A stretch of 64,000 nt of DNA. Origin: Dimorphilus gyrociliatus. Lineage: Eukaryota > Animalia > Annelida. Below are positions 6,934 through 56,739 of this stretch, piece by piece. Numbering within the stretch: the first letter of the stretch is position 1; every line of letters starts with the position of its first letter. The DNA lies in NCBI GenBank assembly GCA_904063045.1, contig CAJFCJ010000020.1, forward strand, positions 798,916 through 862,915, given 5' to 3'. The translations under genes and the position numbers were made by a program. The notes under the pieces are model-generated. The model saw nothing but the letters and a program-made list of their open reading frames with translations, was not told the DNA's origin and did no database searches.

Positions 6934-6989
6934 TGTTCTCTACTTTGAAGCAAAGGAACGAATGTGTCCACTTCTCCAAAAACAGACCA

Positions 6990-7008
6990 CTTTTATAGTT
7001 TCCCGCCC
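6990..7008 (-). promoter_or_regulatory. TATAAAAG box preceded by GC box (GGGCGGG) for PAN-1
   Basis: Minus strand reads GGGCGGGAAACTATAAAAG, about 60 nt upstream of the ATG at 6933. Confidence 0.55.
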
Positions 7009-7483
7009 TGAACGTCAATTGGTCAGAACGGGTAAAAAATGCCGAGTCACAGTTAGACCCTAAAAATTTTTCCTGACGCTGCAAGAAAAAAGAGGGCTGA
7101 ACGATTCACCGGGGCCCTCAACTACACATTCTAGATATCTTTACGATAGAATTGGTTATATACGTATAACCAACTAAAGTTGAAGACTTTCGGTCATAAA
7201 CGTCCCGTTTTATGAACCGTCTCATTTACATTGTTAGTTGATTTTTGGCTGAAGTTAGCATAAATTTTCTTTAAAAAGAGTTTGTAAACTTGTTTACCCT
7301 TTAAGAAGTAACTATTACAAAGATACAATCAATTTGTTAATAAAAAACAAGTATCTAGATGAATAATTACTTTTAATTAAGGATAAGAATTATATAGATA
7401 TAGATAAGGATAATTTAAAATAATAGCTACGCCTTCTATTTAACAAGCTTTTATTCAAAATATATCTAATAAGTTGAATAGTT

Positions 7484-11471: not shown

Positions 11472-11746
11472 TGTACAATTTATTGCTACTCTTGAGCAAC
11501 TGTCTGTTCAATTTCTATACATATCGAAGTTGCAACTTAAAAAATTGCAGTTAATTTAAATGTATGACTTGCATAACTTTTAAATCAACAAATTAGGCAT
11601 ACAGTAATCATGCTTGAGTATTAAAAAAAACTGTTCTTAGGTATTTAATTAGGTCATTTATTAAGTTAATTAAAAAATACTTAAAAGCTTAAAAATTGAA
11701 ATTAAAAAACTAATAAAAATGCATTAATTAAATTATTAATTAATTA

Positions 11747-27069: not shown

Positions 27070-27491
27070 TAAATGTTAATTCATTTAATACAAACTAAAA
27101 ATTGAACTTTGCGTATCTTGTCTTTTTTTTATGCATATTTAATTAAAAGCATTAATAAAAGGTACAGATTGTACTCTTTAGACTCTTTCAATCTCTAATT
27201 TTGACAAACTTTATCTTTAATGCAATTTTAAAAGTAGAATTGGTATTGTTTATTAATTGCAATTAGAAATAAAAATGCTCTATTATCTTTAAGGAAAGGA
27301 TTATGGAGAAAGGGAGATATAATAAATTTGGACAGCTTGAACAACGAAACAAAGTTAAATGAGTACATGTTATTTTTTACCGAGTTGAGTCATCTGTTAA
27401 TTGAGTAATGTAACAAAATGCTTATAAATTGAGACAGTTTTAGAAAGAAAATTTAGTTTTTCGGCTGATTTTCTTGCTGGCTAAGGAAATC

Positions 27492-29659: not shown

Positions 29660-30181
29660 AGAATTTCGGTGCTGCTTGAAACTATCAAACCTGAATTCCC
29701 ACAGACGCTGCATGAATTTATACTTGTTTTTACATTTGTACAGTTCTCATTTTTGAGTTTTTTTTTTAAATAAAAATTTGTTAATGCTACAAAAAGGTTG
29801 ACTTCTTTTCTTCTATACAGTCTAAACAATTTTTAAAGGTTGAGATAAACCTTGAACACTTTAGAATATTGAACATCGCATCTTGAATTCTCTTAACAGA
29901 GATGCTTATTAGTCGTTTTCGTCTGACAGCGAAATTATTCAGTTTGAAGACAAGAAAGGTTTTTAGATTTATTCTATCTTTAGGCTGGAGATTGACCTTT
30001 TTTTAAACAGACTTTCGAAGTCGTTGGTTACTTATGAGGTCAATTTGAACGAAATAAATTTATAGCAAGCTACCGAATTGAACAAAGAGTACAGGCTAAC
30101 TTAAATTGAGTACTTTTGGTGACTATATAGGATTGAGTGAACTTGAAACGTCAGTTCCTATACAGCAGCCACGAGACGAAA

Positions 30182-33100: not shown

Positions 33101-36096
33101 TATTTGAGTAGAACGACGAAAGCCATGTATCCAAAGTCGTTTAAAAGAACTCCTAATTATGTCTATCTAGAAAAGAAAGATATCTGCAAGCCAAGTAAGT
33201 ATTAGTTAATATTTTCTCCCCTTAAAAAAAAGGGTGTAGAGACGAGTAGTATACTATTAATATAATTGGCAGACTGTAAAGTTCTTACCTTCTCGGGAAA
33301 AACACTGATTGGGTACGATGTAAAACAAGTTAAAGCGACGTCAAATGCAGATTGCATCAGAGCGTGTATGACTTACAAGGGTAATTGTAGGTTAGTGACT
33401 AAGTGATTTAACCTTGAAACTTATTTACCGTTTACTCCTGAATGTCTTTACATGTTAATAGGTCAGTTGAAAGGAATATTAAAACAAATATATGTAATTT
33501 ACACGTCGAAACGAAGAGTACAAAGCCAACTTCTTTTAAACCGAATCTATTGTATATTTATTGGGAATTGCAATGCAATCGTAATATGATAATTTACATT
33601 TCTCTATTATTTACTTAACATCATTTATCATTTTTAGTTTGCTTTATTGAATTTGATAATAGAAAATCAGTTGTGGAAGTTGCTGATCAAGTATTAACTC
33701 TGACCTCTGAAGAGTGCAGATCAATGTGCTTACAGAAGAAAAATTGCGGGTAAGATCTGCAATTTTTTTTTAATTTTCTCTTATCAATCATATTAGTATT
33801 ATAAATAATTTATCAATTAACTCTTTCTTCATTCTAGTGCTATACAGTGGAACAAACAAAATGGAGAATGTTACTTTTGGTCGGAGAATTCGCATCAAAT
33901 TGTTCTCAACAAGGAGTACAGTTTTTGGAGAGTTGATCCCAGTTGTAAAACTGATTGCTATTTGGCAAAGTACGAAAATAGATATCTTAGTGGATTAAAT
34001 ACAAAATCCCTAGTTGCCAACTCCGATTTAATGTGCGCCGAATTATGCCTTAATCATAAAGAAGACTGCAAGTGAGTGTTGTATTAATGAATTAATCTAT
34101 TTTAATTATTAACTATTAGTAATAATTTAAATAGTTATTAATTTAATGTTATCTTGTCTTAAAACCATAGCTCGGCGGAATACAATAAGAGGCTTGGAAA
34201 ATGTATATTATCTACGCTAACAAAGAATGTTAAACCAACTGCATTTACTGTTAGTACATCATACACTTATTGGGAAAAAAGATGTGGCGAAGACTCTATA
34301 AAAGAATACCCCTGTTTTACAACATTTATGAATACTTTCTTAACTGGTTTCAATACTAAAACGCTTTCAAACCAAACTCCAGAGTCTTGTATCAATGAAT
34401 GCTTAACAGCCGATTTCCGTTGTCTGTTAGTAAACTATTTAATTATTTAGAAAATAGCATATCTTAGAATAACGCGACTTGTATATTTTATAGATCCGCT
34501 GAATACTCTTTAAGAGAGAAAAAATGCTATTTAAGCACTGAAAATATGGATAGTCAACCTGAGAAAATTTCTTCTAGTTCGTCGTATATTTACTTTCATA
34601 GGAAGATTGAATGTGCTTCAAGTAAGTTGATGGGGGAGGGGAAGGGGGGAAAGAGTAAAACGATTTTTTATTGTATTGTAATAACAGTAATAACAATAAT
34701 AACAATATATTTTTTAATTTAAAACTAGAATGTCTACTTAAAGAGTATCCAAAGAAAGTGCTTATTGGCCATAATATAGATATTTCGACAGCGAAGTCGA
34801 AATTAGATTGTATAGAGAAATGCTTAACTGATTCGAGATGCAATTCGGTTGAATACGATTATAAAACTAGTACATGCTATCTGCAAGCAGAGACTAGAAA
34901 GACAAAACCTGTTAATTTCGAGGATTCTAAAGTGTATAGTTATTGGGAGCTAGTTTGTCAAGATCGTAAGTTTATAAGTCTTTAATTTAAACAATAGACT
35001 GTATGGAATTTGTTAAATTTTAATTAAGAATGTCTGTTATTTTAATAAAAAACAAACTATTTTATTTCAAATAGCTTGTTATTTTGAGGAATACAAGGAC
35101 AAAACTTTATGGAATAACAATAAGAAACAAATTCAATTGACAACACCGCTCATGTGTAAGTCGGCATGTTTAGCAGAAAAGACTTTTAATTGCCGGTTAG
35201 TCTATTTTCTTTCGTTTTATATTCATACTGTTAATTTAAATTATGTATTAAATTTTTCTCTTTTTAGATCTGCTCAATATAATAGATACACGAGAATTTG
35301 CTATCTATCAGAGGAAAATTCACAGACTAAACCGAATAACTTTATGAACGATTTAGCTTTCGATTATTATGAGAAGACTTGCGGTAGTGGATCGAACTAT
35401 TGCTTTAAAAAGAGCGAAAATCTACAATTGAATCATCTAACGAAATTTTACGAAGGAATATCTATAGATTTATGTATACAACGTTGTCTTACTCTACACA
35501 ATATCCACTGCAGGTAAGTGTAATAATTATTATTAAAATTAAGCGAATATTCTTATTAATTTACTTTGTTTAACAAAAATAGATCTATAACATTCCACAA
35601 GCCATCGAGCACTTGCTATTTGAGCGAAGAATCAAAAATAACGAAATTCAATCAAATCTCAAATCATAAGGAATATACTTACTATCACAGATTAAACGTA
35701 TGCAAACCAAATTGTAAGGTTTTGTACAGAAAGAATAAATATTTAGTTGGTTTCGATATCTATTCGTATAAGACACCTGATGAATCTACTTGCGTAAGAC
35801 AATGCTTGATGAAAGGAACAGATAAGTGCAGGTTAGTAGTGGAAAGATTTAAATTAATAATATTTGTCACTCCTTCTCACTCTCTCACTCTCTCTCTCTC
35901 TCTCTCTCTGTCTATCGAGAATATATTTGTTTGTTTGTTTATGTGTTTATTTATTTATAATATGTAATTTTTCAACAGATCGGTCGAGTGGAATAAGGAT
36001 ACATTTATTTGCTACCAGCAGAGGGAAACTAAAGATACTCGACCACAGAAATTTGTCAACTCGCCAAAATATAACTACTATCAAATTAAGTGCTAA
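30182..36096 (+). CDS. PAN-10: secreted multi-PAN protein, 19 domains; collinear paralog of PAN-1
   Basis: Leader MILRKDFNFVKLFLLISLLSCCQG, a ~2.3 kb intronless exon (within ORF 30657-32984) and many short exons, ending YYQIKC*. Confidence 0.88.
35873..35909. repeat. Imperfect (CT)n microsatellite in the last PAN-10 intron
   Basis: Read directly. Confidence 0.8.
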
Positions 36097-36804
36097 TATA
36101 GAATATACATTCACAGTAAATATATATATATATATATACACATACAAATATATATGTATATATTTCTTAATATGTATGCAATAATTAATTAAACTAATAA
36201 ATGAATTTACATTTATAATTAGTATTGAATTTGCCATTTTGCGAATGTACAGTATATAACGAGATATATTGAGAGGATTCTTCTTCTTTTCAATAGATAA
36301 TAAGAGTTTAATCTAGTTCCCATCAAACCTGTTGATTGATCACTATCCACTGTTGTCATGTGACAGAACTATTAACATGGAGTCAAAAAGGCTTAATTAA
36401 TGGGCTTAATTACGATATTGCTAGTGTCGAATTGTTCAGTTCCTCTCAATAAATACTATTGGATACTAATTCTCTTTAGTTAAGAGTTGAAATAGATTGT
36501 TAAGAATAGGATAAAGGAAGAGAGTATATTGTACATGTGTTTGCTTACTGCTGTGAAAAAGTGTAAGGATGAACTTTGATTTGATAAATTGTAGAACAAA
36601 CAAAGATCGTGTTTTGTTTGGCTGTAGGCAACGGTAGTGTGTAAAAAAAATGGCTGATAGGCCCAAATTTTGTACATAAGCGGCACTTTTACTTAAATCG
36701 CCGAAAAAGAAAGGTTCAAAATATAAAGAAGAAATTTATTGTTTGTTTATATTTCCCCCTCTCAGCTCTACTTGCAGTGATCTATTAAGAGTTATGCTAT
36801 TACT

Positions 36805-39800
36805 ATGAAGTTGTTACTTACTTGTTCAGTCATCCTATTACTACCATTTTTAGGAGAAGCTGTTTTTGATGTAGATAGTAAGTAATACTTTCATAATTCA
36901 AACGCATAAATCCAGAATATATACTTATATCCATATACAATATGTATATGTGCTGTATGCTAAAGGTTGCTACTATCTTGCAACTCGTTTAGTCCTAACT
37001 ATGAAAATAACTAGCTATTTGAAAAATTAACAGAGTGTTTCCAAAACGAAGTTGATTTCTTTCCTATCGAAGCTTCAACAGCTTTTGAAAATATTGATTC
37101 ATTATCATCATGCCAGCTAAAATGCTTAACAATTGAAGGGATTTGCAGGTTGGGCTTTTGATTAATTCTAGCCATTTTTTTTCTTGTTGGTCTATCACGT
37201 TCTCTCTTTTTGAGCCTAGTTTCGTATTATATTTTTCTACTATTCCGAGATGTTTTTTTTTCTTTTAATCTTTTAGGTCTATCTGGTACAATGAAACCAA
37301 TCGAATATGTTATATTCTTAAAGATTGGTTTTATAACGGTCATCCCGAACTATTTTCCAATAAGCTTAGACCAGTAAAGAAAAGAAATTTTATATGTCAA
37401 CCGGGTAACTTTTTATATTAAATAATAATAATAATTCTACATTATACATTATTATCATTAAAGATTGCTATATGGTGAAAGCAACTTTACCATTTTCACC
37501 AAGAATCGATAAACTGGTAAAGTTTATGACAAATTCATCTGAAGAATGTCGAATTCTACCTCTAATCATGTCAAATCAAAACTTTCTGTAAAAATTACTT
37601 AATTTTAATAATCTAAATATTTAATTAATTCTATATAATTTAAGTGTTGCCGATTATTTACCTGACGAGAGCGCATGTATATTAAGACAAGGTCGACATT
37701 CCATGGGAGAGGATAAATATTCGTATGAGAAAAAATGCAATTATATCAATGCCTGCTTTGACAAGACATCAAATAAGTTGTTAAAAACTAGTAAAACTGT
37801 TATAAAGTTAACTAAAACATTCGAGAATTGTGTGTATTCTTGTCTAACATCTGAAGTTAATTCGTGCAAGTAAGTTTTATTGCAAAACAAATGTATAGCA
37901 CTTAAATTCTCATTCATTCTTCTATTGTCATTTTTTAACATTATAACATTTAGATACTTTAATTATGCAAAGGAGAATCAATTGTGTTTTTTGTATAAGG
38001 GAGATAAAACCGATTATGTTGAAACTAAAGTAGGATGGGATTTCTACGAAAAAAAGAGCTTTTGTAAAAGCCGTAAGTTGTTTATTTCTTATACAAAGCA
38101 TTATTCTTATTTTAATAATAATAATATATTTAAAAGACTGTACATTCAATCAAACGACACCGCCTCAAAATGGTACTATTGCTCAAATAACAATAAAGAA
38201 GCCGGTATTCTCGACTTTACACTGCTTAATTATCTGTTTAAGTAGTCTAATGGGTTGCAAGTAAGATGACCTATCAAGTAGAGTAATCCTATAATATTAA
38301 TACATTTATTATTTTATAGATATATAACCTATGATCCAAAGACCTTTTCTTGTTATTTGAGCTATGCTGACGAACAATTTCCTCGGTTAACCACCCAATA
38401 TTGGAAGTTAGAGTGTAACAATCTAAATAGCAGTAATTAGAATTGTTTTAATAATTAATTGTTTAAAAAAAGCTACTGATTTTATAATTACCTCTTAAGC
38501 GTGTTTGATGCAAAATCATCCGGGATTTTATGTGGATGTTAAAGAATCGTTATCATATAAAACATATGTCAGTCAAGTAATTTGCGCTGATATTTGTTCG
38601 GCTAATAGCAACTGCTCGTAAGTAAATTTCATATATACTTATAAACATTTTAAAGAAGTTATCAGTTAAAAGTATTTATTAATTATGTTCTTAATTATAT
38701 AAAGTGGAGCAATTTTCGAAAAGGAGGGAGGTAAATGTACGACTGTTAAGGAGAAACTGATGAATAAGCTTAAATATAAGAAAGGAATGACTTTACTATC
38801 AAAATTATGTTTAAACGATGAAAGAGAAAGCGTAGAAAATCATCCTTGTTTTAAACCCTACTACTTTCGTGGGGTTCAAGGTCCTTTCTATAAGTCTGTT
38901 ATTAAACCAACGACAGAAAGCTGTTACAATTTATGCCTTCGAGAAGAAAATTTCTATTGCAAGTAATAAATGAATAAATAAATAAATTAGCATCTTATAA
39001 ATAGAGAAAGAAAAACTTAATATACTAATAAGCTTTCTTCTTTCAACCCTAAATATAGAAGTGGAACTTACTTTCCAATTTATGGTATCTGTAGTCTGAG
39101 ATCGTATAGTGAACCTAAAAAGCCTAATTCCCATTTCCCTTTTCCAATGATGACGTACTTGTATTTCGAGAGGACAGAACGCTGCCGACCTGGTTAATAC
39201 AGCAATATATAATAATTAGTCGACATTCTCATTAAAAATTACATTTATTTATAAAGACTGCCTCCTGAAGAAGACTGTTGGAGTACATCGCAATTACATT
39301 AGAGGATCTGTTAAATCCATCAAGGCTAAAGATCAAGAAGATTGCGTAACTCAATTTTTTATAAATATGGGACAAAGCAATTACAGGTTCATTATCTTAA
39401 ATGGTTTTACTCTTAAAAACAAAGAAAAAAGCATCTATTTCATTTTTTTCCCTATTTTTACTATTAAGTGACTTTTACTGGAATTCAACAAATAAAAAGT
39501 GTGCAGCCTTCCAACGAGGAACAGATGTAGCTAACATGCTACCTGACATTACATCTTTCGAAACCGATTGCGTAAAAAATTGTAAGTTAATTATCATACC
39601 TTTCCCTATTTATTTGATGTTTCACTATTTAATTATTTCCTGTTAAAACATCTAGACGGATGTCGAATGATAAGATCTTCAAAAGCAAATATTACGAAAG
39701 CGTACGAAGATTTGTACAAGACTTGCGAACAAAATTGCCTTGAGATTAGTAAATGCAGGTTAATAATTAAGAATAGATTTTCTACTGGATAATTGATATT

Positions 39801-42800
39801 AATAGCATAATACAATATATTTAATAGGTCGTTCCATGTATGGAAAGAAAAAAATGAAAATAAAAAATGCGTACTTTCGTTATTTCTCGAAAGAAATAAT
39901 CAATCAAATAAGATATGTTCATCGCCTGAAGATGCTTGTTTCACTGAGAAAACAGGGAAAGCAATACGCTCAAGTCCAATAGCTACGTACAACTTTATCA
40001 ACAAAACGCAATGTTTGAAACTCTGCCTATTATCAAATACCTCTTTCTGCTCGTAATTTATCTCCTTTTATGATATAATTATTGATATTATTTATCATAA
40101 GAATAATAAGTCTTTCCCCTTCAAAAGAGCCGCAAATTACAATTTGGAAACAAAAACGTGTACATTAATACTAGCTAGAAACGCTTCCTCAATTATCTTA
40201 CTTAATGATAGCAGCTATTTCTTTTATGAAAAGAAACAAGAGTGTTTACCAAGTAAGTAGCTATTATCTTTTAAACTGTTAAGGTAAAATGTCATAATAT
40301 ATTCTATTGTTTTTATAAAGAGTGTAGAATTACCGCTTTTCCTGGACATCTTGTTCAAGATCATTTTATTGCAAGATTTTCATCCGATAACTATGTACAT
40401 TGTCTACAACTTTGCATAAAGCAAGGCTATAAAAAATGCAGGTAAATAATAATAAACTAATTTACTATTATTGGATATTTAATCATAAACATATATAAAA
40501 ACAATGAAATGACTATATAATTAGAGGGGTTGATTGGAGTTCTGCAACAAGAAATTGCTATCTTTTGAACGAAACTAAACGATCTTCAATACTTGTTGAT
40601 ATAATAGAGAATATACATTTTACTCACTACGTTATTGAATGCAGTGATGAACCAGAGCGTCAGTATTTCGAAATCCATTAAAAAAACTAAAGTCAATTAA
40701 CTTTTAAGTTTTTCTCTCTAATAAATTAGTCACCAAGTTGGGAATGTGTTTCAAGAAAGTCAGTAAAGCCGTTGTACCTGTAGCTCTAAATAGTTTTGGA
40801 ACGAAAACTGCAGCTGAATGCCTTCTTAAGTGTCTACATTCGAAATCATACTGCTCGTAATAGCTATTTATTTCACCGATCAAATTTTTCATTTTATAAT
40901 GTCATTTATTGCCCAAAAATAGAGCAGCAACTTATGATAAGCGTCTTAAAAACTGCAATATTGGCTATTCGCTAGTACCATCAACATCAACTAACTCTAT
41001 AAGCTATGTTAGGGAAGATTCATGCGGAAAATGTATCACATCTAAATATAACAAATATCTATAATCGAAAAATTTACAAACCTTTTTCCTCCAATAGACT
41101 GTCATATTGAGAAAATTTCAAATGGCTATGCAATGGGATATTCAAGAACAGGTTTAAGATCTGCTTCTAGAATTGAATGCCAATTATCCTGTCTAATACC
41201 CAAAAAACTCGATTTTTATTGCAGGTTAAACTTTTCTGCTTACACTTTTAAATTGCTTTTTATGGTTTTAGTGGTTTTTATTGTTATTTTTTTTAGATCG
41301 GCTTATTATAATCCAAAAAGAAAAACTTGCTTCTTAAATGATGCTAACAAAAATTCGTATAAAGTTCCTTTAGCTCCGTCATTTATTAGCAATATTTACG
41401 AAAATTATATTATTAATTGCCTCCGAAGTCCGAAATCCAGTACGTACTTTCTCTATTATTATGATTATTAACATCAAAAATAGCTATTTATTTACAATTT
41501 TCTTTTCATTTGAAAACAGAAATTGATAAATGTTTTACACATTTTCAAAGAGCTTCGCCATCAAATATCCAATTTGTCGTAAAAACATTAGATCTAGAAG
41601 AATGCCTCGTAAAATGCCTCATATCTTCTTCAAAAGTATTGTAAGAGAAAATTTTCTATTTCGTCTATATAATTACAAAGCGTAAAATGAAAATATAACA
41701 CTCTTTTTCCCCCTCTCCATCCAACTTTATACTCTTTAGATCCTGTCAATATGATTATAAAACCAATAATTGCTATTTTAGTGAAGAATCTAATAAGACA
41801 GAAGAACTTGTAAAAAGTTCTTCATATGATCACTTTCAAAAGATTCCATCATGTCCTTTAAACGGTAATAATGTTAAAATATATATTTTAATGGATATTT
41901 AAAATAACCTCTTCTTCTTCTTCTTCTTCTTCTTCCTCTTATGTATAGGTTGTACCTTTGAAAAAGTAAGTAACCTATTTTGGACAGTTGCATCTATGTC
42001 AAGGAAAAATCATTATGAATGTTTTTACGATTGTTTAGTTTCAGACAATTGCAAGTTTGTTAAAATTTTTCTTTTCTTTAATTAATTATGTTTATATTTA
42101 GAGAAGAAATAAATGACCCTTTGTTTGTTTTCTTTCCTCCTTAATAGATATGTTCACTATGAGGCGGAAACACGAATGTGTACATCCCCGGCTCTTGGTA
42201 ATGTAACTCATGGAGCAAAATTAAATAATGCGTACAAAAAGGTTTGTCAGGGAAAGTTTGTAGATCCTTGTTTTGTTGAAAAGAAGGGATTATATTTGGA
42301 TGGTTGGAATAATAAGATTATTAAAAAATCAAATGAAGAAGATTGTAAAAAAGCTTGTCTAAACGCTCAATTTGATTGCAGGTAGACATTGCTGTTTATT
42401 TATTTTCTTTTGGTAAAATGAAAGCTTTACCTTCTTTCTATTTAACATCCTTGCTATGTAGCTCGGCGGAATTCTCGACAAACGGTCGTACTTGCTACAT
42501 AAGCTCTCATAATAGCACTACAAAGTCGAAGTACATGAAGAAATTATCATTCTATATATATTGGGAGAGAAAAGATCTGTGTCGTCCAGATTGCCATTTT
42601 ATTGAAAAGATGGGCAAGAAAATAACTTCTGCTATATTACATAGCCCAGCCAAATCACTCTACCAATGTCAAACTGCGTGCATGATAAAGAGTAATTGCT
42701 CGTAAGAATATCCTCAAAGTGCCAATTTGAGTATGGTCTAATTTACCATTCTAAAACCCAACAGATCGTTAACCTTCACGAAAAAAGACGGTTGTTTATT

Positions 42801-45800
42801 GAGTGATTCTACGAAATTGTCTAGCCAATCTCGTATTTCAACATGGATAAAATCATGCCCATCCTCAAATAGTAAGTAACCTTTACAAGCTGAAAAGTTG
42901 ATTACACAAAGAGGATGTGAAACTAAGAAATCTTTCATTTACAATTTGACCTATACATTTCTTGTTTTTTCCATAATTAAAAAAAAGCTGACGACTGCTT
43001 CGAATTTTTTACAAAGGATAAAGTTAGAACAGCATCGGTTACACTAAGATTAACAACAGATTCCATCGAGAAGTGTAAACTGCTTTGTTTACAGTATAAG
43101 TGCCCGTTAGTTCTATTGTTTTATTACTTGATATAATTATTTTTTCAACATTTTTCAACTATTTACAGAGCTCTTACCTTTCAAACGAAAAGAGATAAAT
43201 GTCTATTAATGAGTAAAGAATTTTATTACGTAAGATACGGAAAGAGATTAACGTCTCCTGATGAAATACGATTAAATACAAGAGATAAATGCAAAAGTGG
43301 GTAAAAAAAAATAACAAAAAAGAAAAGAACGAAATAACCAATTAACTTTCATTTATTAACTAATTACTATTTATAGTTTGTAGAGTGAAGCAAGTACACA
43401 ATAAATACTTTCCTATTAATGGTAGGAAAGTTATTAGACCAGTATATTCACCTTATTCTTGTTTGTTAAAATGCCTAAAAGAAAAGTCATTCAAGTGCTC
43501 GTAAGTTTAACTATTATTCAAGATATCACAACTAAAAATAAACTATTTTAGACTGATTCATTTCAAATTGGGAAATCCAGTTTGTACTTTAAGCTCTGAA
43601 ATGATTAACTTTTCTTCGAGCGGAATAGATTCCCCGAAAAATGAATATATTGCAATAAATTGCGATTATAACGGTAATAACTGTATAAGATATACATATT
43701 TTTATAAACGATTATTACTGACCTCGTTTCTCAGAATATTGCTTTAAGCGGCTGGACGGAAAGTTTCTTAGTGGCTTAAATACTCGTACTATATTATCGT
43801 CAAGTGAAGAGAAATGTAAACTAGCTTGTATATCGGAAAGAAAATTCCTTTGTAGATCTTGTGATTTTTATAAGCCTGATAAGCATTGTTACCTAAGCAC
43901 TTCGACGAGACAATCCAATGCAGCCCAGTATTCATCTAGTGCAAACTTTATTCATTTTGAAAGATTACCAGCTTGTCGATTTGGTTGTTCATTCGATTCT
44001 AAAATATTAACACATGAGGTAAAATATTCCAGAAAATTACATGGTATGACCAGCTTCGATTGTAAAGCAGCTTGCATAGTCACAAATGATTGCCAGTAAG
44101 TTAAAATATACCAACAATCTTTAGTAAATTGATAATCTAAACTAACTAAACAGCGGAATTGTACTATTGAATAATGGTACTTGTCTCCTCTCATCAAATT
44201 CTTCTGGAGTTGTTAAAAAATTTCCCTCGCCTGTCGCTACTACAAAACTGAATTGCAAACCGGCTGAAAGTAAAATTATTCTAATATCTATACCACTAAT
44301 ATTAAACTATTATATCTTTTAATCTGTTTAGCTGATTGTTTTACTATGAAAGTTGGCGTAAAAGTTTTAGATCAACCTATTAAGAGTTATATATTGCAAA
44401 ATGAAACTGCGTGTAGGATGGCTTGCCTCGACGAAATTGAATTTGAATGCAGGTATAAACAATAGTCAAATATGAAAGAAATGTACAATTCTTCAATAAT
44501 CTTTTGTTTTTTTCAAATATAGAATAGTCGCATTCTATCGGAACTCTGGAACCTGTAATTTATACTTTACTAAAAATGCCGAATTGTCTAAATCATTTCC
44601 CTCAACTGTTGTCTTTTCAAAACTTACGGAATGCCAGAAGGGTTGTGGATTTAGAACAATATACAAAAGAGCATTATCCGATAGTTCATCTTTTATAAAA
44701 TTAAAGAGCAATAGTTTAGAAAGCTGTAAATCGATATGTTTAAGGAAGAATAGAACAGATTGTATGTAAGTATATAATTATCATAAAATATGTAACAAAT
44801 AAGGTATTTGTATTAATTAATAAAGTTAATAAATTCATTTAAACAGTGGTATATATTACGACCGTAGACGTCGTATATGTAATTTGATAAAGAAAACTAA
44901 AAAAGTACTTTATTCACATTATAATTCGAATTACGTTTATGCTAGTTTGGACTGCAGTAATAAAAAACGTAACATTTTCTGATTTACCAAACTTAATTAT
45001 GCTAATTTCATGTGATTTTTAATTACTTTTCTAGGTCATTGCTTTACGAAATATGATTCACATTATTCAATTGGTCATAAAAAAGTCATTAAAGCCTCAA
45101 ATGAGACTGAATGTACAAATAGTTGTATGAAAGAGATAACCTTCTATTGTAGGTAAGTATACGTAATTAGAGTAAATAGAACAATTAATGAAATTTGTGT
45201 TTCCTTATTAGAGCTTGCCAATATAATATAAAACGGAGAACATGTTCTTTATTTAAGAATATCACTTCCCGTCATTTAGTCAATGATGATTTTACATTTT
45301 GGAAAAGATTAGACACATGCAAATATAGTTAGTCCTATTAATTAATTAAAACACAAGTATATAACTAAATGTGTTCTTAAACTATTGTTATTCCTTTAGA
45401 TTGTTATTTGAAAGAATCTAAAGGCTACTTCCTAAGTGTTACGAACAAAATATATCATCGCTCTATCGACATAGAAGTATGCAAAGAAAAATGTATGAAT
45501 GAAACAGCCTTCATTTGCCTGTACTATAAATATACAGTATATTTATATATTCTTACTTTTACCTGACTCTTCTTAGGTCGGCCGATTATGATTTAATATC
45601 AAGAACATGCGCTCTGAGCATTGAAAGTCAATCAACGAAGCCGAAGTTCTTTATAAAAAGAGAAAGCTATATCCACTGGGATAAAACTTGCAATGGAGTA
45701 GATTGGGATTGTTAGTAATAGTTTTCTTGAATTTTTCTTAACAGGAAATGTGCACAATTATATAATTTCACGTTTCTACAAACAGCTGATCCTTGTTTCC

Positions 45801-48800
45801 TCTCTTTTAACAATATGACGGTTCGTTCTGTTGCCTCGGAAGTTGTTAAGTTTTCAAATCCTAAAGATTGTAAACAGAGATGCATGAATAGTACAAAATT
45901 TGTATGTTCAGGAGCAACTTTTTCATCAAAGAAGCTAACTTGTACGCTTTATAATAACACGAAACCATCATTGAAGAAAGATACATATATACATACACTA
46001 AATCACTATTATTACTCTCTAAAACAAATCTGCAAACCTGCATTAGGTGTTAGCTGTTTTATGCAGGAATTTTCTAATAGAGAAACTGTAACGCATTCAA
46101 AGAAATCACTAAAAGCGTCGACCCTTCGCCGATGTCAAATGCTATGCTTCGCTGAAACAGACTTCATCTGTACCGCAATAAGCTTTCAAGAAAATAGCCG
46201 AAATTGTAGATTATATGAGACAAAAGAAGAAAGTATCCTTTCATCACTCCTTCAGGCAACTGGCTCAATATTTTCGATAAAACGTTGCGTAAATAAAAAT
46301 GGTCTGTTTAAAAGAATTTTATATATTAAAGCACTCAACTTTTCTGAATGTCAAATTCTGACCTTTTAGACGAATGTTTTACAACTCAAGAAGTCCATAT
46401 TTGGAAAGACTATAGTGTTTATCTATCGTCAAATTTTTGGTCATGTAGAGCTTTATGTATCGAAGATTCAAAGTGTAGAGCTTTTATTTTTATCAATTCA
46501 ACTTGTCATCTAAGTGGAACAATACCAATTAAAAAATTTGGCGAAGATGGATTAACCGGTCATATAAAGAATAATTGCGCTGATCGTAACTAACTTTCCA
46601 TCATTTTATTTGTTATTAATACTATTAATGTTTAACTTTCTTTAACTTTACACTTCCCAGTTTGCACAATTAAGGAAATAAGCAGTCTTCACACTTCAAG
46701 CCAGGATATTCAGTCAATTCGAGCAATATCAAAAGCAGAATGTATAAAGGCATTTTTACAATCGAATTACTCATTAGTGAAGTAAATATATTTGTAGATG
46801 TTGTGATACTATTCTCATTTTCAATCAAATAATATTTTCAGATCAGCAGAATACAACTCAGACTCAAGAAATTGTTATCTTAAACGAAAAGATATATATT
46901 CAGCATCTCAAACATATAAATTCAGTGGATCACATGCTTATTTTCAAAGAGATTGCCCTCATGAACGTTAGTAGACAATATTTTCATTTCATTAACTATC
47001 TTTACACTTCTTGGAAAACAGACAGGTGCTTCAGACAACAACGTGGTTATCATATGAAGGGCTCTTACATTAAAGCTATTTATTTAGATTTGATAAAGGA
47101 GTGTGAAGAGGAATGCCACAAGGATGAAAATTGCTTGTTTGTATTCAATATATCCATTAAATATTAATCAATTAATTACCATTTTTTCTCCTAAAAATAA
47201 AAGGTCAATAGACTATAATGGATCAGACAATCTATGCGTTTTACATTCCGATTCCAAAGCAACTAAACCTATTTTATTCGAACCACATAATACAACCACA
47301 TATTCTGAAAAAACAATATGTGACCAAATTCCTGGTTGCTTCAAAGTATTCATGAACTCTTATGTTAATCTTCGATTCAGTAAAATAGTTAAAGCTGTTA
47401 CTGCCGAAAGTTGCAAAAAGTACTGCTTGTCAACTAAATATTTCTATTGCAGGTGAAGGAATAGTTAATGATAATAATTGATTAGTTTAATAAAAAATGA
47501 TCATTGCTTGTTCATTAAAGATCAGCTATATATAGAGCTAAAGACAACAAATGTATTATAAGTGCTCAAGGTGATATCAGGACTCGTTTAAGAAAACGTC
47601 CTGGTTCTGTTTACTTACATAGAACTTTATGCAAAGGTAGGTAACATAGGAAGAGAAATTTGTTACATAAAATACTCTATTTTTAAATCTCTGTTTCTTA
47701 AACAGATTGTGAAATGGTTAAACATGTTAATAAAACGATACCAAAAGAACTATATCCAGGAAATAGATATCAATATTGTCCTTCATTTGAGGAATGTTCT
47801 AAAATATGCTTTTATCAGTTCCAACCTGAATGTCGGTTAGTATAATGATATATTTCGTAGGTTTGAATAATTTTAAAATTAATCTTTTTTTTATCAATGC
47901 TTTCCTCTGTCCGTTTGCCTCTTTTTTCTCTTTCTGTCTGTCATTCTTTCGCTAATATCTGCTATTTTTCTACTTACTCGCAGCTCAGCTTTATATAACA
48001 AGAGGAGAAGAACATGCAGACTTTTGTCGAATTCTAATGGAACCTGGAGCAGTAAATTGATATCTGATCCTAATTATATTTATTTCGAAAAGAAATGCAA
48101 GGGTTTATCCGGTAATTTTAATAAGATTTATTCATTTTTCTCTTCACCAAACTGCAACGTGTACAACATTATTGTTTCTTTCGTTTAAAGATAAATGCGA
48201 CTATGTTTATAGAAATAATTGGCTTTTAAAAAAATACTATAAATCTACTATTGTACCGAATGCAGATGTATGTAGTCGGTATTGTTTGGTAGACAGTTGC
48301 AAATCATTCTCCATTTCTTCAATACATAATTCATCTAGTTTGGTCTGCTATCTAAGCACTTATAATCGTCTTAGAGCGATTAGTAGTTTTGTTCAGAGTA
48401 ATATATCGACCCATTATGAAAAAGTATGCCAACAACATAAATTTAGTAAGTTGCACTTAAGTTATTTATAGTCTTGATTAAACATACATATTATATTTAT
48501 TATATTTACACTTATTAGTATGTAAGATTACTGAATTAGGACCAAAGACGTTATTAGGTCCCACTAAAAGTGATTGGATTAAATATAAAGGAACATCGAA
48601 ATTAACTTGTCAAATACTTTGCGATACTGAGAAATCGTTTGTTTGTACTGGAGCCAAATTCGATATTCAAAGCGGTGACTGCTTCCTCTACAAAAATCCT
48701 ATAAACACACCTAATTATGAATTTAAAAGTTCTACTACAAGTTTGTTTTTCATTAGAAACTGTGATGGAAAAAGTGAGTTTAAACAGAAAAATACGACAC

Positions 48801-50393
48801 ATTAAACAATAATGCCCTAAAATTATCATTTTATTTTTAGCTATTGTCCCTCCTAAGACTGTCAAATGCCCCCCACATTGGCACTATGTACATGAAACGA
48901 AGAGCTGCTACCATTTAAAGCATAACATAGCTTATAATTATGAGACAGCAAGCTCTTACTGTTACGCGAATGGAGGGAATTTAATTTCTTATAAAGATGA
49001 AGAGGAATTTAATAGTTTAACATCCACCTTAGAGAGGTAAGAGGATAAAATGAATATTGGTTAAATAAGCACAAATATTGACATGAACTAAATTAGATTG
49101 AGATTAAACCATGGCATCAATTCGGAAGTTTTGTGGTGGACTTCTGGACAGCTAACAGAAAAAGGTTGGAATTGGCAAGAATTAGATCCATTGGGTGAGC
49201 AGTTAGACCTATTTTTCTCTTTTTGTTTAATAAAATGAATGAAAATAGATTAAATGATTAAAGCTGTACTTTTTTAATTATTCTGTTCGTTAACTATTTA
49301 AAACAGCGAATCAGAGCTAATTCTTATGAGCTTTTCTTATTTTCAATCTTAATATTACTTAGCCTACAAGAAAAGGATATATCCACATCCCATTACTTTA
49401 ACAAAATGGTTTAAGAAGGAACCAAAAGATAAAGCAAATCACATGGTTATGAAATACGGAAGTAGAAAAGAACATATCATACGATGGGGATCAATGGCAG
49501 TAACAGATAAAACTTTAGCCTTAGCTTTATGTAAGGCAGATCCTGATCAAGGTTGAAAAACTTATCATAATTTGCTTGAATAAGCACCTATCATACAACT
49601 CCAGTATGATTATCTTTTTTTGTTTTTAACTAATCAGCTACAGAACAGTGTTGGAAAAATACATGTTTGAATAATGGAGTTTGTGTGGAAAAAAATCTCA
49701 CTTCTCCAAAAATTCCCACCATAGAATATTCAGGTCGAGGAATGGACGACGATGAAGAGGATGCTGAATCTACCATTTCGCTTTTTCATTCAAAAGTTAC
49801 AAAACTCGCTCAAGGTTACAAATGCCGTTGTATCAATTCAACTGGAAATAATTGCGAGTTACAATCACCTACTTTTAATGAGTCACTATCTGCTCTTTAT
49901 AAAGATTTCTTTATATCTAAAGTGGCTATGTCATTCGAAAAAGCGAGTCTTTATTGTAAGAGTAACTCTGCTTCCATGTTGATCTTGAGCACAGAAATGG
50001 AAGAAGAATACTGGACATCAGTTTTAGAAAGAGATAATCTCCAAGGAGTATATTGGTTGTCCGCAAAGAGACGGGACAATAAATGGTATTGGCTTGCTAG
50101 TTCTAAACATCTGACTGGTAAGTATTAAAAAGAAACTTTTATTTACCTTAATTAAAACTATGAGTAACAAAATACATTTAGCAAATAATGAAAGTTTTGT
50201 AATAGATTCTTTTACTATAAATAAATTAGCCTCATTCGAAATGACCTATACGAATTGGCATGAAAATGAACCGAACAATTACATGCATTCGGAATCTGCT
50301 GCTGTATTATGGTATACAGAGAAAGACGGTTGGAAATGGGCTGATGCAAATGAAAGGAACCTTTATCCATTCGTATGCGTTTCAATGAAATAA
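36805..50393 (+). CDS. PAN-11: giant secreted protein, ~3,100 aa: signal peptide, 33 PAN domains, C-type lectin, EGF-like, C-type lectin
   Basis: Leader MKLLLTCSVILLLPFLGEA. I traced the many exons with compatible splice phases and found no internal stop or second signal peptide. C-terminal KCPPHW...SCY...YC..NGGNL (CTL), CWKNTCLNNGVC...CRC..GNNC (EGF), FEKASLYC...WLS...NWHENEPN...WKWAD...FVC* (CTL). Individual splice choices are uncertain. Confidence 0.78.
41911..41935. repeat. (CTT)n microsatellite in a PAN-11 intron
   Basis: About 8 units read directly. Confidence 0.8.
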
Positions 50394-50724
50394 CAGAGAA
50401 AAACGTTTTTTTTTCATATTATTCTATTTACAACAATTATTTCATTATTCTTATTAATATAATAAAAAAATATTCATGTTTTCAATTTATTACAAAAACA
50501 AATACTTCATTTTTAATTTATTAAAAAACTAATATGGAATTAACACCATTAAAATGTCAGAAAAAGATAAAGTTAAAAGATAGAGAGAAGGGGGAGGGAA
50601 GAGAGAGAGGGGGGAGGGAGGCAAACTGAGAGAAAAAATCTCGTACATGAATAATCAGGTAGAAAGCGCCGCGCACTCTTAAAACATTTAGTAGTAAGCG
50701 GCAGGTTGTTGCCGAGCTTGGATT

Positions 50725-52890
50725 ATGGATAAACATTTGGCGTTACTGACTGGATTTTTAGTTTTATTTGGATATAAAGTTAATCCAGTAGATGCTTTCT
50801 TAAAGAATCCGCAAAGTCTGAATATTTCTATGGATTACAATGCATCGTAAGTAGTTAATTTGTATAAATGATGATTCTCTTCTGAAGTAGTACTTTACAA
50901 TCTCGTTTTTTTTTCTTTCTTTTTCCATTTCCACCCACCCAAGTAAAATAACTTAGATTGTATATGAGTTTAAAAATATCCTCTTAAGATTGTTATCTAA
51001 CACTGAATGATGACCTATTCCATAGGATAGGATAAACCGTATCAACTGAAAATGTCATTTGGCCATTAGGATTCTATTTTCCTTTAAGACTACTCTTCTA
51101 TAGATTATTGTTAAATCTGTTAAATAGTTAAAATAGGTTAATAGTTTGTTATCATAGGGTATTATCCGAGTTCATCTAGTGGTTGAATAGCAATCTATGC
51201 AGATATTTTTAGAATATTAACTATATAAATGAAGTGAACTGCATGTTTAATGTATTCTACTAAGAAACAATAAAAGTTACAATCGTATATAAAATAATAC
51301 TCTGAAATGCATATTTTTCATAATTAATGTTTAAGCATTGTCTATTATGTACATCCAAAAGTTACATATGGCGTTAGTTTATTACAGATATTTTACATTG
51401 TATTATTATACAAGTAAACAATATATATAGATATATTCGTACCCATAATAATCACACACAACCTTTTCATACATCAATGCAGTAAATTAAAGCAATGATT
51501 TACTAAAAAAATGTCTCATTGTAATATCTGCCTTGCTTCTGGACAAAAATATCGCTATTTTATTGCTTATAAAGAGACCTCACTATATCTTAATTGTTCA
51601 GTTAAAATATTACTTTTTAATTATTAAATATTCTATTGTATTATAAGGGTAATTTTCGCATTTATATCACACTTTATTTATATCATTACAATTGAATTGA
51701 ATAACAGATTTTTAAAAAAAAAAAACAATTTATAACACCTCTTTATCGTGTCAAAAAAGAATTTTATCAATTATACTAGCTATGTTAGACATTTGTAGTT
51801 CGTTTATATCGGTTTTGGGTGAGAAGTAATTGGTGGTTGTCGGCGTTTCAATATCCTAAAAAAATCATTAACGTTTTTTTAGTCTATTTTGGTGACGCTC
51901 CACTTTTCTGTAAATAAAAACACTTAGTTTGCCATCAAAAATCTTTCACTCGATCGTGAAAGGCCATTAAATTTATAATTAAGAAAAATGGTATAGGAAA
52001 ATTTTATTAACAGTTTTGTAGTGTATTTAGTATAAGTATATAGCAATGTTTTTTAATCAGGGACAGCTACTTATCTTTTGTTAGTAAAAGGAAAGTAATA
52101 TTTTGTCTTATTTTAATAAAATCTTTGGCATATAAAATTAGTGTCGTCATTTTCCTGATTAGCTATCATACGAGTAAGATGATCCTTGATAAAAAAAGAT
52201 TTAGGATCGATAAAGTTGACGCTGCAAGCTTCCGTATTGTTTCCTTAAGACAAACTAAGAATATTTCGACTTGCAATGTTTAAAAAGCCTAAAAGTAGCA
52301 ATTTTTTTTATCTCATTTTTTCCTATTATTGAATTTTTACTCAGATTTTCACCAATAATTCTTTATTAGAGAATAAGATTTGAGTGAAAGAAATGTGCAT
52401 GTTAAGTCAAACAACTATTTCCGAAGGCAATGATGCTCGTTTAATGATTCATAAGAAGTAAAGTAGAATATGAACAACAAGTGTCACCAGGAATAATTTA
52501 TATGTTTGTCAAGAATATTTAATTTATATATAACGTTTGTATACACCAAGATTATATCCTTCGTGGCTATGTCTTTCTCCGCTTCTCTGTTTTGTTATTA
52601 AAGAGCAACGAAAAGTCACATTTCCCTTTTTATATTGATTACCGATCACTCAAATTGATCTTCATTGGCTTAATACCTTGCTTTTCCATTTATTTCACAT
52701 GTTTATGAATCTATGACCATTGGTATTTTAAATCTGGTATATACAAATAAGGAAAAAAACATGTTAAGGGGCCGGAACGGCGGTGGGCAAAGTATAAAGA
52801 TATACGACGTGGTCTCCCTCATTGCCCATTTTGTGTTATAAATTACTTCTTATAAGTCTCTTCTTTCCCGTTTCATTCTCTATATTTCTC

Positions 52891-52955
<65 letters not shown>

Positions 52956-55132
52956 TTTCATTTCCCTTTTTACGGGCTCATACGAATAGCAAACTACTGC
53001 TAATTAACCTCTCCAGCTTTATCGATTTTTGAAACGATATACTTTCTTCGTATTATTAAAAGAGAATCGGATGGAAAGAAATAATATATTAAACTAAATG
53101 CGATATTTCAAAAATGTTTCTTTTATTCTTTCACAAAATATCCTTTAATTGATAAAAACGTTTCCCAACAGGCAATTAACTCTTTCGGAAGAGAGCCGAA
53201 TCAGTTTCCATTTAATGGAACGGTACAAAAAGGTTGGAAATATTGCAAGACCAGTAGAAAATGCTATGAAGACTGTAAAAGTTGAATTTGGATTAGCATT
53301 GATTCAAATTTTAGACTTTGACGAAACAAATCAAGTATTGACAACAAATGTTTGGAAAAGATATGTAAGTGAAACGGATAGATTTTTTTTTCTCTGCATA
53401 CAAATTATTATCCCATTCTCACCTTACGTAACCTACAAATATTCAATTTTCCCTCAATTTTGCTTGATTGTTTGATTTAGATATGGCTGGATGAAATTCT
53501 TCGTTGGAACCCTTCGGAATTTGGAAATATATCCAATATTCGCTTACCAGCACCTAAAATTTGGACACCGGACATAGTTCTATACAATAAGTAAGATTTT
53601 AATGATAATGACATACACTAAAATAGGTTAGATTTAAAGAGTTCAGTTAAAGTTTTTCAAGTAAAACCACTTTAGTTTAGAAAACGTGTGACCATACTTA
53701 GAGCATTGTCGATCTAAGGTAATAAGAAACTAGTAGCTTCCTTAATAAGTTTAATTCTTATTAAATAATAATAATGAAATTGACAAATCTTTGTCAAAAA
53801 AAATACGATTAGTCTGTAAACAAAGAAGGTAACAAATAATATAAAAAACTCCATTAACCTTATAAATGACCCCAGTATCTAGAATTTGGAACCTTATACG
53901 CTTATTATAATAAATACAGCGCTGATACCCAAGAAAAACAACACCTGGAATCAGTAACGGTTGCTCACTTTGGTCTTGTTAGATGGATTCCCCCGGCAAT
54001 TTACAAGTCCAGTTGCCAGATCGAGATGAGAAATTTCCCCTTCGATACCCAAACTTGTTTCTTCAAATTTGGTTCCTGGGTGTATGATGGGCATAAATTA
54101 GATCTCGTGTTTTATGAAGGAAGAGACGATGTGGACTTGAGAGAATATGTTGAGAGTTCCGAATGGAATGTTGTTTGTTAGTAATTTTTCATATGAAAAA
54201 AAAAAGAATTTAGGAACTCTTTTGTTTTTTAATGACAAAGCTTATTGGTTACATATATCTATTCTATTTTAGATACATCCGCAAAACGAAACGTTCGTAC
54301 ATATCCCTGTTGTGATGACGAACCGTATCCTGATTTGACGTTTCGACTGACAGTGAAAAGAAAAACAGCATTTTACATGTATGTGCTCATACTGCCCAGT
54401 GTAATGCTTTCGTTTCTCACATTGGTTCTATTCTGGATACCTCCTCAGAGACCCGATAGAACTAGCTTGGGTAAGTTTCTAGATTAATAATAATTGTAAT
54501 TTTTGTTAACAGTACGTCTATTATTCGCTTTTCTTTAAGGAATGAGCCTATTTTCAAGTTTTTTTGTTCTTCTCCTCATTCTCGTACAAAGTTCGCCACC
54601 TACTGCATCGATTTCCCTTCTGGGTGTCTATTACTGCTTGAATATGGTGCTCATAGCCATATCAACCATGGTTTCAGCACTAGTAATTAATCTGACATAT
54701 TATTTACAAAGGAGAAAACTCCCATTTTTAATTAAAGCCGTAAGCGATTTCAAATTATTGATCTTAAATGACAAAATGACAAAATGACGGAATTTTTAAC
54801 CTAAGAATTACATATATCAGATTTTTGTTCAACACCTCGGTCGACTATTATGTGTAAGCAGAAACAGTTTAGCTGATGAACCGAATGAAATAAACAAACG
54901 TACAAGTAGTTTTACTGAGCAAAGTTTCCCTCTACGGAATGGTAAAGCGAGCGAACAAACCCTATCGAAACGCAACGATTGGAAAATTTTAGCATCCGTT
55001 ATTGACAGGTATACGCTACTTTTCAATTTCCAATCATTCACTAAATTCTCGACTTTTTTATATTACAGGCTTTTTTTTATAATTTATACGATTGGTTTGG
55101 TTTTATCCTTAATTTTCGTCTTCCCCCGTTAG
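50725..55132 (+). CDS. Nicotinic acetylcholine receptor alpha-type subunit (Cys-loop ligand-gated ion channel), 8 exons
   Basis: Signal exon 50725-50846. WTPDIVLYNNA, Cys-loop CQIEMRNFPFDTQTC, loop B WVYDG, loop C YPCCDDEPY (vicinal Cys = alpha), M1-M3, short cytoplasmic loop, and DWKILASVIDRLFFIIY M4 ending FPR*. Confidence 0.95.
52895..52953. repeat. (TC)n microsatellite in nAChR intron 1
   Basis: About 29 perfect units read directly. Confidence 0.95.

Positions 55133-55335: not shown

Positions 55336-56739
<1,404 letters not shown>

Follow-up and report, generated by a model that had tools for sequence, protein, structure and literature searches.

The analyzed window is a 64,000-nt stretch of the Dimorphilus gyrociliatus genome (contig CAJFCJ010000020.1). 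At 36805 to 50393 on its plus strand lies one gene of 57 exons, the 9,216-nt coding sequence of which specifies a protein of 3,071 amino acids (aa). All 56 introns are bounded by GT..AG, their median length is 70.5 nt, and the frame contains zero in-frame stops. The exon chain was built with a splice-aware dynamic programme and then corrected by hand. The programme gave the plus strand a score of 424, compared to 8 for the opposite strand and negative values for shuffled sequences; as its codon table was derived from this same gene, the control is partly circular. Inspection of the sequence together with the depth bins and RNA joints led us to drop from the first models the spurious upstream exons (36535 and following) and a short exon at 47088, and to replace the last-exon acceptor at 50182. 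The coding sequence starts with the ATG at 36805, the very base at which the first of two public gene models (gene A) begins, and ends with the stop codon at 50391 to 50393. A likely polyadenylation signal, AATAAA, is found 68 nt past the stop (50461 to 50466, plus strand), and the next public gene (nAChR) begins at 50725. An Rfam scan of the window gave no matches.

Exon 1 (36805 to 36877, plus strand; phase-1 donor GTAAGT), read from the sequence, carries the start codon and the signal peptide (residues 1 to 19), with the n-region MK, a hydrophobic core, and GEA/V. The top Kyte-Doolittle window covers residues 3 to 21. This signal peptide is the only hydrophobic stretch in the 3,071-aa protein, and no membrane or glycosylphosphatidylinositol (GPI) anchor was found, which confirms the absence of a membrane anchor claimed in a preliminary description of this DNA. 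The protein contains 41 N-X-S/T sites. From its sequence, the gene is predicted to give rise to one mRNA of approximately 9.4 kb and to a secreted, unanchored glycoprotein of approximately 354 kDa. A model in which the gene continues the upstream plus-strand array of PAN domains (26.1 to 36.0 kb) was provisionally rejected because of the signal peptide and public start at 36805, the AATAAA motifs at 36196 and 36448, and the length arithmetic of an RNA contig described below.

Public databases already list the product, in the form of two partial predictions without names. The public annotation splits the locus into an unnamed upstream gene (gene A) of 618 aa at 36805 to 39982 and a gene (gene B) of 1,780 aa at 42176 to 50393 (DgyrCDS12453; CAD5124153.1; A0A7I8W6J3). 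Together, these fragments begin and end where our model does and share most of its exons. Between them, 39983 to 42175 (plus strand) has no public gene model, since gene A stops at 39982 and gene B opens at 42176. This stretch contains the rest of exon 15 (39983 to 40052), exons 16 to 25, and the first 28 nt of exon 26 (42148 to 42175), and all of its exon sequence is in frame with the PAN array. Furthermore, the public model skips three plus-strand exons that are present in the RNA contig: exons 39 and 40 (45212 to 45520; flanking RNA joints 45149/45209, 45327/45400, and 45520/45577), which are absent from the public protein fragment P0001, and exon 51 (48191 to 48445; 48190 to 48445 in the contig table), which encodes part of the array at PAN 32.

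Expression of the gene was observed directly. In run X1, the type of which is not on record and which we took as cDNA from its spliced joints alone, a single 9,265-nt contig contains 22 GT..AG joints across 44521 to 50337, with no other letters. The mRNA of exons 36 to 57 is thus seen as one spliced contig (44523 to 50337, plus strand; record 1 positions 5114 to 9265). Fifteen of the 22 joints were listed and all of them agree with the model; every exon in 44521 to 50337 is also compatible with the coordinates of the contig. On the basis of this contig, the exon borders at 47022 and 50230 were corrected. Splice joints were viewed directly in this interval, and exons 1 to 35 were joined by the model. 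Two further contigs lie partly on the gene and have unexplained loose ends.

The same contig bears on whether the locus is one gene. According to the public annotation, there would be two or more separate genes here, with a 2.2-kb gap between the two annotated ones, and our long frame would be an artefact of chaining similar exons. Indeed, a dynamic programme returns some chain in any case, and a contig across two genes is by itself no proof of a single transcript. However, the X1 contig contains 5,115 nt more upstream of 44523, equal to the 5,009 nt of coding sequence in the model plus 106 nt, and this upstream mRNA of approximately 5.1 kb bridges the two public fragments. Even if the 5,113 contig letters upstream of 44521 were unspliced, they would reach 39408, a position beyond the start of gene B and the stop of gene A. 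Moreover, gene B has no signal peptide and begins with an internal Met halfway through PAN domain 14, the end of gene A runs in a frame that departs from the PAN frame, and the gap holds approximately 10 canonical half-PAN exons with the same phase pattern. The share of sampled words (k-mers) contained in X1 was 0.55, compared to an expectation of 0.564 with all exons from 40401 on and of 0.484 with only those from 42176. This fits the presence in RNA of all exons from 40401 on, including those of the gap. Together with the near-zero scores of the opposite strand and the shuffles, these data make separate genes very unlikely. The single gene proposed in the preliminary description, running from a signal peptide through 33 PAN domains to a lectin-EGF-lectin end, is upheld by the open 57-exon frame, the spliced contig, and the profile matches, with the EGF part assigned by its Cys pattern.

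The central part of the protein (aa 26 to 2700; 37036 to 48851, plus strand) is an array of exactly 33 PAN/apple domains, each scoring 25 to 60 bits against a self-built hidden Markov model (HMM) seeded on Pfam-verified repeats. On P0001, Pfam PAN_1 (PF00024) matched 12 stretches with an E value of 9.8e-82 and 269.3 bits (cut-off, 21.4), and single exons reached up to 53 bits. Half-domain exons of the N-terminal third (pieces of 37 to 47 aa) gave, as expected, no Pfam match alone; they do match the profile seeded on verified repeats. Each PAN unit consists of an exon A (C1 to C4) and an exon B (C5 to C6), with introns lost in some units, and the exon phases are uniform for every repeat. The canonical spacing is C1-x24-C2-x3-C3-x6/7-C4-x11-C5-x25-C6. 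Most of the 33 domains have all six Cys; domains 2, 7, and 28 are without C3 and C4, which were lost as a pair. The mean identity between repeats is 21%. An AlphaFold2 (AF2) model of the PAN domain had a pLDDT of 96.6 and showed the five-stranded sheet packed on one helix that is characteristic of the fold; Foldseek aligned it to HGF N, plasminogen, SML-2, and factor XI with TM scores of 0.7 to 0.78. Searched with phmmer, the PAN part matched no PDB entry, so the profile was needed, and this matched every solved PAN class in the PDB. Repeated duplication of a PAN unit of two exons probably gave rise to the gene, within a local cluster of genes with PAN arrays.

Downstream of the array, the protein ends in two C-type lectin-like domains separated by an EGF-like module. 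Pfam Lectin_C (PF00059) matched P0001 in two stretches (E value, 3.3e-11; 44.3 bits versus a cut-off of 22.6). The stretch in CTL1 (aa 2706 to 2852; 48867 to 49535, plus strand) is the second of these; this domain is of the long form, has EPK in place of EPN, and lacks WND (motifs read by eye). Its PDB matches were a PLA2R-family receptor and NKR-P1B. CTL2 (aa 2940 to 3071; 49883 to 50390, plus strand), the other Lectin_C stretch, has EPN at 50268 and WAD at 50337. It aligned with E- and L-selectin at an E value of 4e-10 with EPNN conserved, and the EPN, Glu, and Asp positions account for four of the five Ca2+/sugar ligands of selectins, while the Asn of WND is replaced by Ala. Both inner-disulfide Cys, which would align to DEDCVE and DDAC of the selectins, are absent from CTL2 and, as judged by eye, likewise from CTL1. 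The outer disulfide pair of the core C-type lectin-like domain (CTLD) is kept. Since the inner Cys pair is missing, both domains are CTLD-like by profile but atypical, and the Ca2+/sugar binding of CTL2 may be lost due to the Ala for Asn replacement and the absent inner disulfide. CTL2 provides a natural example of a C-type lectin domain in which EPN was retained and the inner disulfide lost.

The six-Cys module between the lectin domains (aa 2862 to 2930; 49649 to 49855, plus strand) follows the pattern C-x4-C-x5-C...C-x-C-x7-C. It is called EGF-like based on this pattern and on a weak, non-significant local match to the start of the E-selectin EGF domain; there was no Pfam EGF match at an E value of ≤0.1. 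The module harbors a 44-residue acidic insert (49691 to 49822), in which Y-S-G-R-G is followed by DDDEEDAE, and the insert lies within one exon and is contiguous in the RNA contig. Structure prediction of segments, recommended in the preliminary description, succeeded for the PAN domain and failed for this end of the protein: the AF2 model of the CTL-EGF-CTL cassette, computed with no alignment, had a pLDDT of 35 and was unusable.

Sequence searches revealed no characterised or close relative. With the EGF/lectin exon as query, HMMER was run in full against 1.84 billion representative proteins and returned the gene itself only, as did a word-based homologue search with P0001. Atlas searches yielded small PAN or lectin clusters only; those joining Lectin_C, EGF, and PAN_1 are of 305 aa in Cnidaria and 236 to 246 aa in Mollusca, ten times shorter than the Dimorphilus protein and with no detectable orthology to it. 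A literature search found no account of the gene or of PAN expansions in Dimorphilus. The statement that the architecture matches no characterised protein thus holds insofar as no close relative was found; it is qualified by the small PAN and Lectin_C (plus EGF) proteins of other phyla and by the fact that the locus was already public in fragments. What is found here is a lineage-specific recombination of known modules.

Among solved structures, the selectin lectin domains are closest to CTL2, with EPNN and then Glu and Asp aligned. Selectins also resemble the protein in that CTL1 is directly followed by the EGF-like module. However, they possess CCP/sushi repeats, a membrane span, and a cytoplasmic tail, none of which was found here (there was no Sushi match), whereas the Dimorphilus protein has its lectin domains at the C terminus, 33 PAN domains upstream, the 44-residue EGF insert, Ala for the WND Asn, and no inner disulfide. 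The G3 region of the lecticans (aggrecan and versican) is similar in placing an EGF-type module and then a C-type lectin domain at the C terminus of a very large secreted matrix protein. The lecticans differ in their N-terminal Ig and Link domains, long glycosaminoglycan (GAG) region, and CCP domain, while P0001 matches PAN_1 and Lectin_C only and the protein has at most one GAG-like motif. Secreted chains composed solely of PAN/apple domains that serve as lectins or adhesins are known from the apicomplexan micronemal proteins TgMIC4 and Sarcocystis SML-2, which match the PAN domains described here in both fold and profile; EtMIC5 is another multi-apple micronemal adhesin of this group. Unlike the protein described here, the apicomplexan adhesins have 2 to 11 domains instead of 33, lack a C-type lectin or EGF domain, and belong to an unrelated lineage (approximately 15% identity). 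Finally, NompA, NOAH-1/2, and LET-653 bring secreted PAN domains to the apical extracellular matrices of invertebrate epithelia. These proteins also have a ZP domain and, in many cases, a C-terminal anchor in the membrane; in the Dimorphilus protein, no ZP match was detected in P0001 or in the exons, with the N-terminal third scanned exon by exon, and the anchor is likewise absent.

Regarding function, we slightly favor a reading in which a single secreted protein, a PAN chain with a lectin cassette, cross-links an extracellular layer or serves as its scaffold. A rod or scaffold with a lectin head, as the preliminary description had it, is plausible for a protein in which disulfide-locked domains are strung like beads with short linkers between them. 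The PAN chain would offer a long multivalent binding surface, approximately 0.1 micrometre if extended; CTL2 would tether one end to glycans of the Man/GlcNAc/Fuc type, and CTL1, having lost its sugar-ligand residues, would be structural or protein binding. In this way the protein could cross-link mucus, the cuticle surface, or an adhesive or egg-cocoon matrix. PAN arrays have several different roles in other systems.

The same secreted protein could instead act in humoral immunity as a multivalent pattern-recognition agglutinin, with CTL2 and some PAN domains binding microbial glycans. According to the genome paper (PMC7854359), the few gene families that have expanded in D. gyrociliatus consist chiefly of local duplicates with implied roles in immunity, and our gene sits in such a local cluster, but that report names no PAN genes as expanded, and neither "apple" nor "lectin" occurs in its text. 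The EPN motif of CTL2 is typical of Man/GlcNAc/Fuc-binding domains of the collectin and selectin type, the fold matches include SML-2 and MIC4, whose PAN domains bind galactose, and the high divergence of the repeats (mean identity as given above) would suit diversified recognition. On the other hand, 33 domains per chain is far above known soluble lectins. We regard an immune agglutinin as possible, though on balance unlikely.

The acidic EGF insert raises the question of a part-time proteoglycan, in which a GAG chain on the insert would make the C terminus a convergent, lectican-like (EGF-CTL) matrix organiser. The S-G-x-G motif next to the acidic cluster, from 49727 on, lies in an RNA-confirmed exon, and a neighboring gene has an acidic SGSGSG insert. 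Nevertheless, this is one candidate site only, its motif is short and was spotted by eye, and Link, Ig, and CCP domains are all absent. The nearest Atlas cluster is named versican-like, but the name is automatic and its score of 0.92 could come by chance. A proteoglycan is improbable.

The gene does not stand alone as a giant. The window contains approximately 114 PAN domains within 48 kb, approximately 80 of them outside this gene. The idea that the protein organises shorter PAN proteins finds no support here: the neighboring arrays are not short and comprise approximately 56 and 25 PAN domains. Neighboring arrays extend over 2.7 to 25 kb on the minus strand and 26.1 to 36 kb on the plus strand. 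As a doubtful, wider reading, the 48-kb cluster, whose several giant genes contain 114 or more PAN domains, may encode a dinophilid-specific extracellular material made of PAN bead chains, with this gene as the lectin/EGF-ended subunit that anchors or nucleates it. Such a material may be mucus, an adhesive, or the egg cocoon; this gene may be its sole lectin/EGF member, possibly GAG bearing, and the anchoring subunit may be a convergent analogue of lecticans.

The public gene model is corrected by these results: in place of two fragments with 2.2 kb of unannotated sequence between them and three exons left out, there is one secreted protein of 3,071 aa. Every domain type involved is familiar, and marine invertebrates have many mosaic secreted proteins, so we consider the finding useful, not surprising. 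Even in a genome renowned for being compact and for having lost genes, very large, intron-rich arrays of PAN modules are retained, and the gene is a concrete candidate for a part in the chemistry of the matrix, mucus, or cocoon of meiofaunal annelids.

The window has a GC content of ~30% (AT-rich, eukaryotic), and its + strand carries dozens of short open stretches in three frames at 36.8-50.4 kb, with the Cys spacing of half PAN/apple domains. Pfam matched PAN_1 on the longer exons of the target gene (E = 2.7e-14 and 8e-10) and Lectin_C on its final exons. Using a splice-aware dynamic programme with one retraining round, followed by manual correction, we obtained a model that begins with an ATG at 36805 and ends with the stop codon at 50391-50393, with 57 exons and a coding sequence of 9,216 nt (3,071 aa). 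Every intron is of the GT..AG type and 51 to 168 nt long, and the median of 70.5 nt agrees with the published median of 66 bp for the D. gyrociliatus genome (PMC7854359). The programme gave scores of 424 for the target strand, 8 for the opposite one and negative values for shuffled sequence, a control that is only rough because the codon table was derived from the target gene itself. An AATAAA lies 68 nt 3' of the stop codon. An upstream ORF of four codons (ATG at 36794; 36794-36808) overlaps the main start codon.

In public data, the gene is present only as broken, unnamed predictions. We searched the exon carrying the EGF-like module and the second C-type lectin domain (CTL2) against all 1.84 billion representative proteins. 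The sole strong match (E = 2e-102; next, 7e-9) was P0001, which is DgyrCDS12453 of Dimorphilus gyrociliatus (CAD5124153.1; A0A7I8W6J3; 1,780 aa) on contig CAJFCJ010000020.1. P0001 is public gene B (42176-50393); public gene A (36805-39982) encodes 618 aa with a weak PAN_1 match, and the public record holds no annotation between the two (39982 to 42176). P0001 starts at an internal Met within PAN domain 14 of our model. From 42148 on, 28 of the 32 target exons are identical in P0001. Exon 26 is common to both except for the part upstream of the internal start, exon 37 diverges only towards the 3' end (of 38 compared residues, the first 36 agree), and P0001 lacks exons 39, 40, and 51.

Among public runs, only X1 (2017) contains the target stretch; a single 9,265-nt contig from it aligned spliced to 44521-50337 with 22 GT..AG joints. 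The 15 listed joints agree with our model, and the positions of the listed pieces within the contig are consistent with the cumulative exon lengths throughout, including 483 nt for the three exons of the first C-type lectin-like domain (CTL1). Exons 39, 40, and 51, skipped by the public model, are present in the contig. The contig also set the exon border at 47022; for the last exon, the acceptor at 50182 was dropped for 50230, the one used in P0001, according to X1 depth bins. Since contig position 5114 corresponds to 44521, 5,113 further letters lie upstream. Two separate genes, as publicly annotated, are unlikely: even without splicing, these letters would reach 39408, a position beyond where public gene B starts and public gene A stops. 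Spliced according to the model, with 5,009 nt of coding sequence before 44523, they would leave a 5' UTR of 106 nt. Furthermore, the share of sampled 31-mers of 40401-50400 found in X1 was 0.55, close to the 0.564 expected for all model exons; the expected share is 0.484 for exons only from 42176 on and 0.350 only from 44521 on. Exons 1 to 35 are based on these length and 31-mer arguments, the public fragments, splice signals, and a strict exon rule. We conclude that the 57-exon open frame at 36805-50393 is one gene, as the preliminary description had proposed, and that it is expressed. Two more X1 contigs lie partly on the gene (at 44703-44907, 47551, and 48990), with loose ends off splice sites. 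One reads across the intron 44766-44846 and has dissimilar, AT-rich flanks. Possible explanations for the two are contig chimerism, minor aberrant RNAs, or a repeat.

With Pfam-verified repeats as seeds, the resulting profile found exactly 33 PAN domains between residues 26 and ~2700 (25-60 bits each), the number counted earlier. Their divergence was also borne out, with a pairwise identity of 21% on average and 35% at most. Such low identity suggests that the repeats are old or fast-evolving and makes an assembly chimera between them unlikely. The Cys spacing is C-x24-C-x3-C-x6/7-C-x11-C-x25-C, with C3 and C4 lost together in domains 2, 7, and 28. In each unit, exon A spans C1 to C4, with a phase-1 intron before it and a phase-2 intron after it, and exon B carries C5 and C6; a few introns were lost, which left exons of 225-516 nt. 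This uniform coding points to repeated duplication of a two-exon unit. An alignment of 43 sequences, comprising repeats of P0001 and of neighbouring genes, yielded a profile that matched in the PDB the PAN domain of plasminogen (6.6e-7), MIC4, factor XI, SML-2, HGF, and leech antiplatelet protein. With the same alignment, AF2 gave a PAN model with a pLDDT of 96.6, which Foldseek placed at TM 0.7-0.78 to the same folds.

At the C terminus, the CTL-EGF-CTL order described earlier holds for both lectin domains, which match Pfam Lectin_C, but the EGF assignment is weak. CTL1 (aa 2706-2852), a C-type lectin-like domain of the long form, by eye has EPK where EPN is expected and lacks WND. For CTL2 (aa 2940-3071), the nearest solved structures are E- and L-selectin (E = 4e-10); aligned to these, CTL2 retains EPNN, the next Glu, and the Asp of WND but has Ala in place of the Asn of WND and lacks both inner-disulfide Cys. 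The putative EGF-like module between them has six Cys and a 44-residue insert. Pfam returned no EGF match on the target exons, the similarity to the start of the selectin EGF was nonsignificant, and single-sequence AF2 gave no usable model. The insert, contained in one exon and contiguous in the X1 contig, reads Y-S-G-R-G and then DDDEEDAE (S-G-x-G plus an acidic run, from 49727). By eye, it resembles an acidic insert with DDSGSGSG in a neighbouring PAN array (24109-24387, - strand), and both look like glycosaminoglycan attachment motifs. A part-time proteoglycan would be an alternative reading of the protein, based on this one short motif. The whole protein has 354 kDa, a pI of 9.0, 207 Cys, and 41 N-glycosylation sequons. 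We found neither a membrane span nor a GPI-type tail; since the signal peptide is the only hydrophobic stretch, the protein has no anchor, in line with the preliminary description.

That description had also called the architecture unfamiliar. The modules and their co-occurrence are already known, as Lectin_C, EGF, and PAN_1 occur together in small cnidarian and mollusc proteins (Atlas, a database of protein clusters), but by sequence comparison the 33-fold PAN array with the CTL-EGF-CTL end has no detectable relative. The best non-self matches of the C-terminal exon were multi-CTL proteins without a PAN domain, and a word-based search with P0001 among lengths of 979-3115 aa returned only P0001 itself. 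Queries in the searches were exons of the target or sub-ranges of P0001. The protein resembles three families without sharing their defining features: unlike selectins, it lacks CCP repeats, a membrane span, and a tail; unlike lecticans, it lacks Ig/Link modules, a long GAG region, and CCP; and unlike ZP-PAN matrix proteins, it lacks a ZP domain. With apicomplexan multi-apple adhesins it shares only the PAN chain.

Together with neighbouring arrays detected by the same profile, the gene belongs to a cluster of at least 114 PAN domains in 48 kb. The neighbours for the most part have few introns, and two PAN subtypes alternate in them. One gene or a few genes on the - strand (2728-24985) encode ~56 PAN domains, many of which lie in long intron-free stretches (e.g., 9795-11507 and 19075-20691); the alternating subtypes abut, with ~3 residues from C6 to the following C1, and the array may exceed the target gene in size. 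Immediately upstream of the target, 26104-35964 (+ strand) encodes ~25 PAN domains, nine of them in an open stretch of 777 codons (30651-32981). AATAAA signals at 36196 and 36448 and the separate signal peptide of the target suggest that this array is a distinct gene. The neighbouring PAN proteins, called shorter in the preliminary description, are not short. Within the cluster, the lectin/EGF end was seen only in the target gene, and reading the neighbours' open stretches by eye revealed no other obvious domain types. Directly downstream lies a nicotinic-receptor-type subunit gene (50725-55132, + strand; public, 463 aa; Neur_chan_LBD and Neur_chan_memb). By eye, we further noted a polyubiquitin gene (467-codon open stretch at 55339-56739, - strand) and an IRF-like DNA-binding motif (...KFRIPWKH...) in an open stretch at 367-747 (+ strand).

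In summary, the gene is expressed, and its product carries a secretion signal, 33 PAN domains, and two C-type lectin-like domains, with no anchor. The main alternative for its function is humoral pattern recognition: the few expanded gene families in the genome are local duplicates linked to immunity, but PAN genes are not named among them (PMC7854359). In the scaffold role that we propose, the PAN domains would form an extended multivalent chain of ~3 nm per domain, of the order of 0.1 micrometre. CTL2 would tether or cross-link it to Man/GlcNAc/Fuc-type glycans in a Ca2+-dependent manner, and CTL1 may have a structural or protein-binding role. The protein would then be a scaffolding component of a secreted layer, which may be mucus, adhesive, the cuticle surface, or the cocoon.
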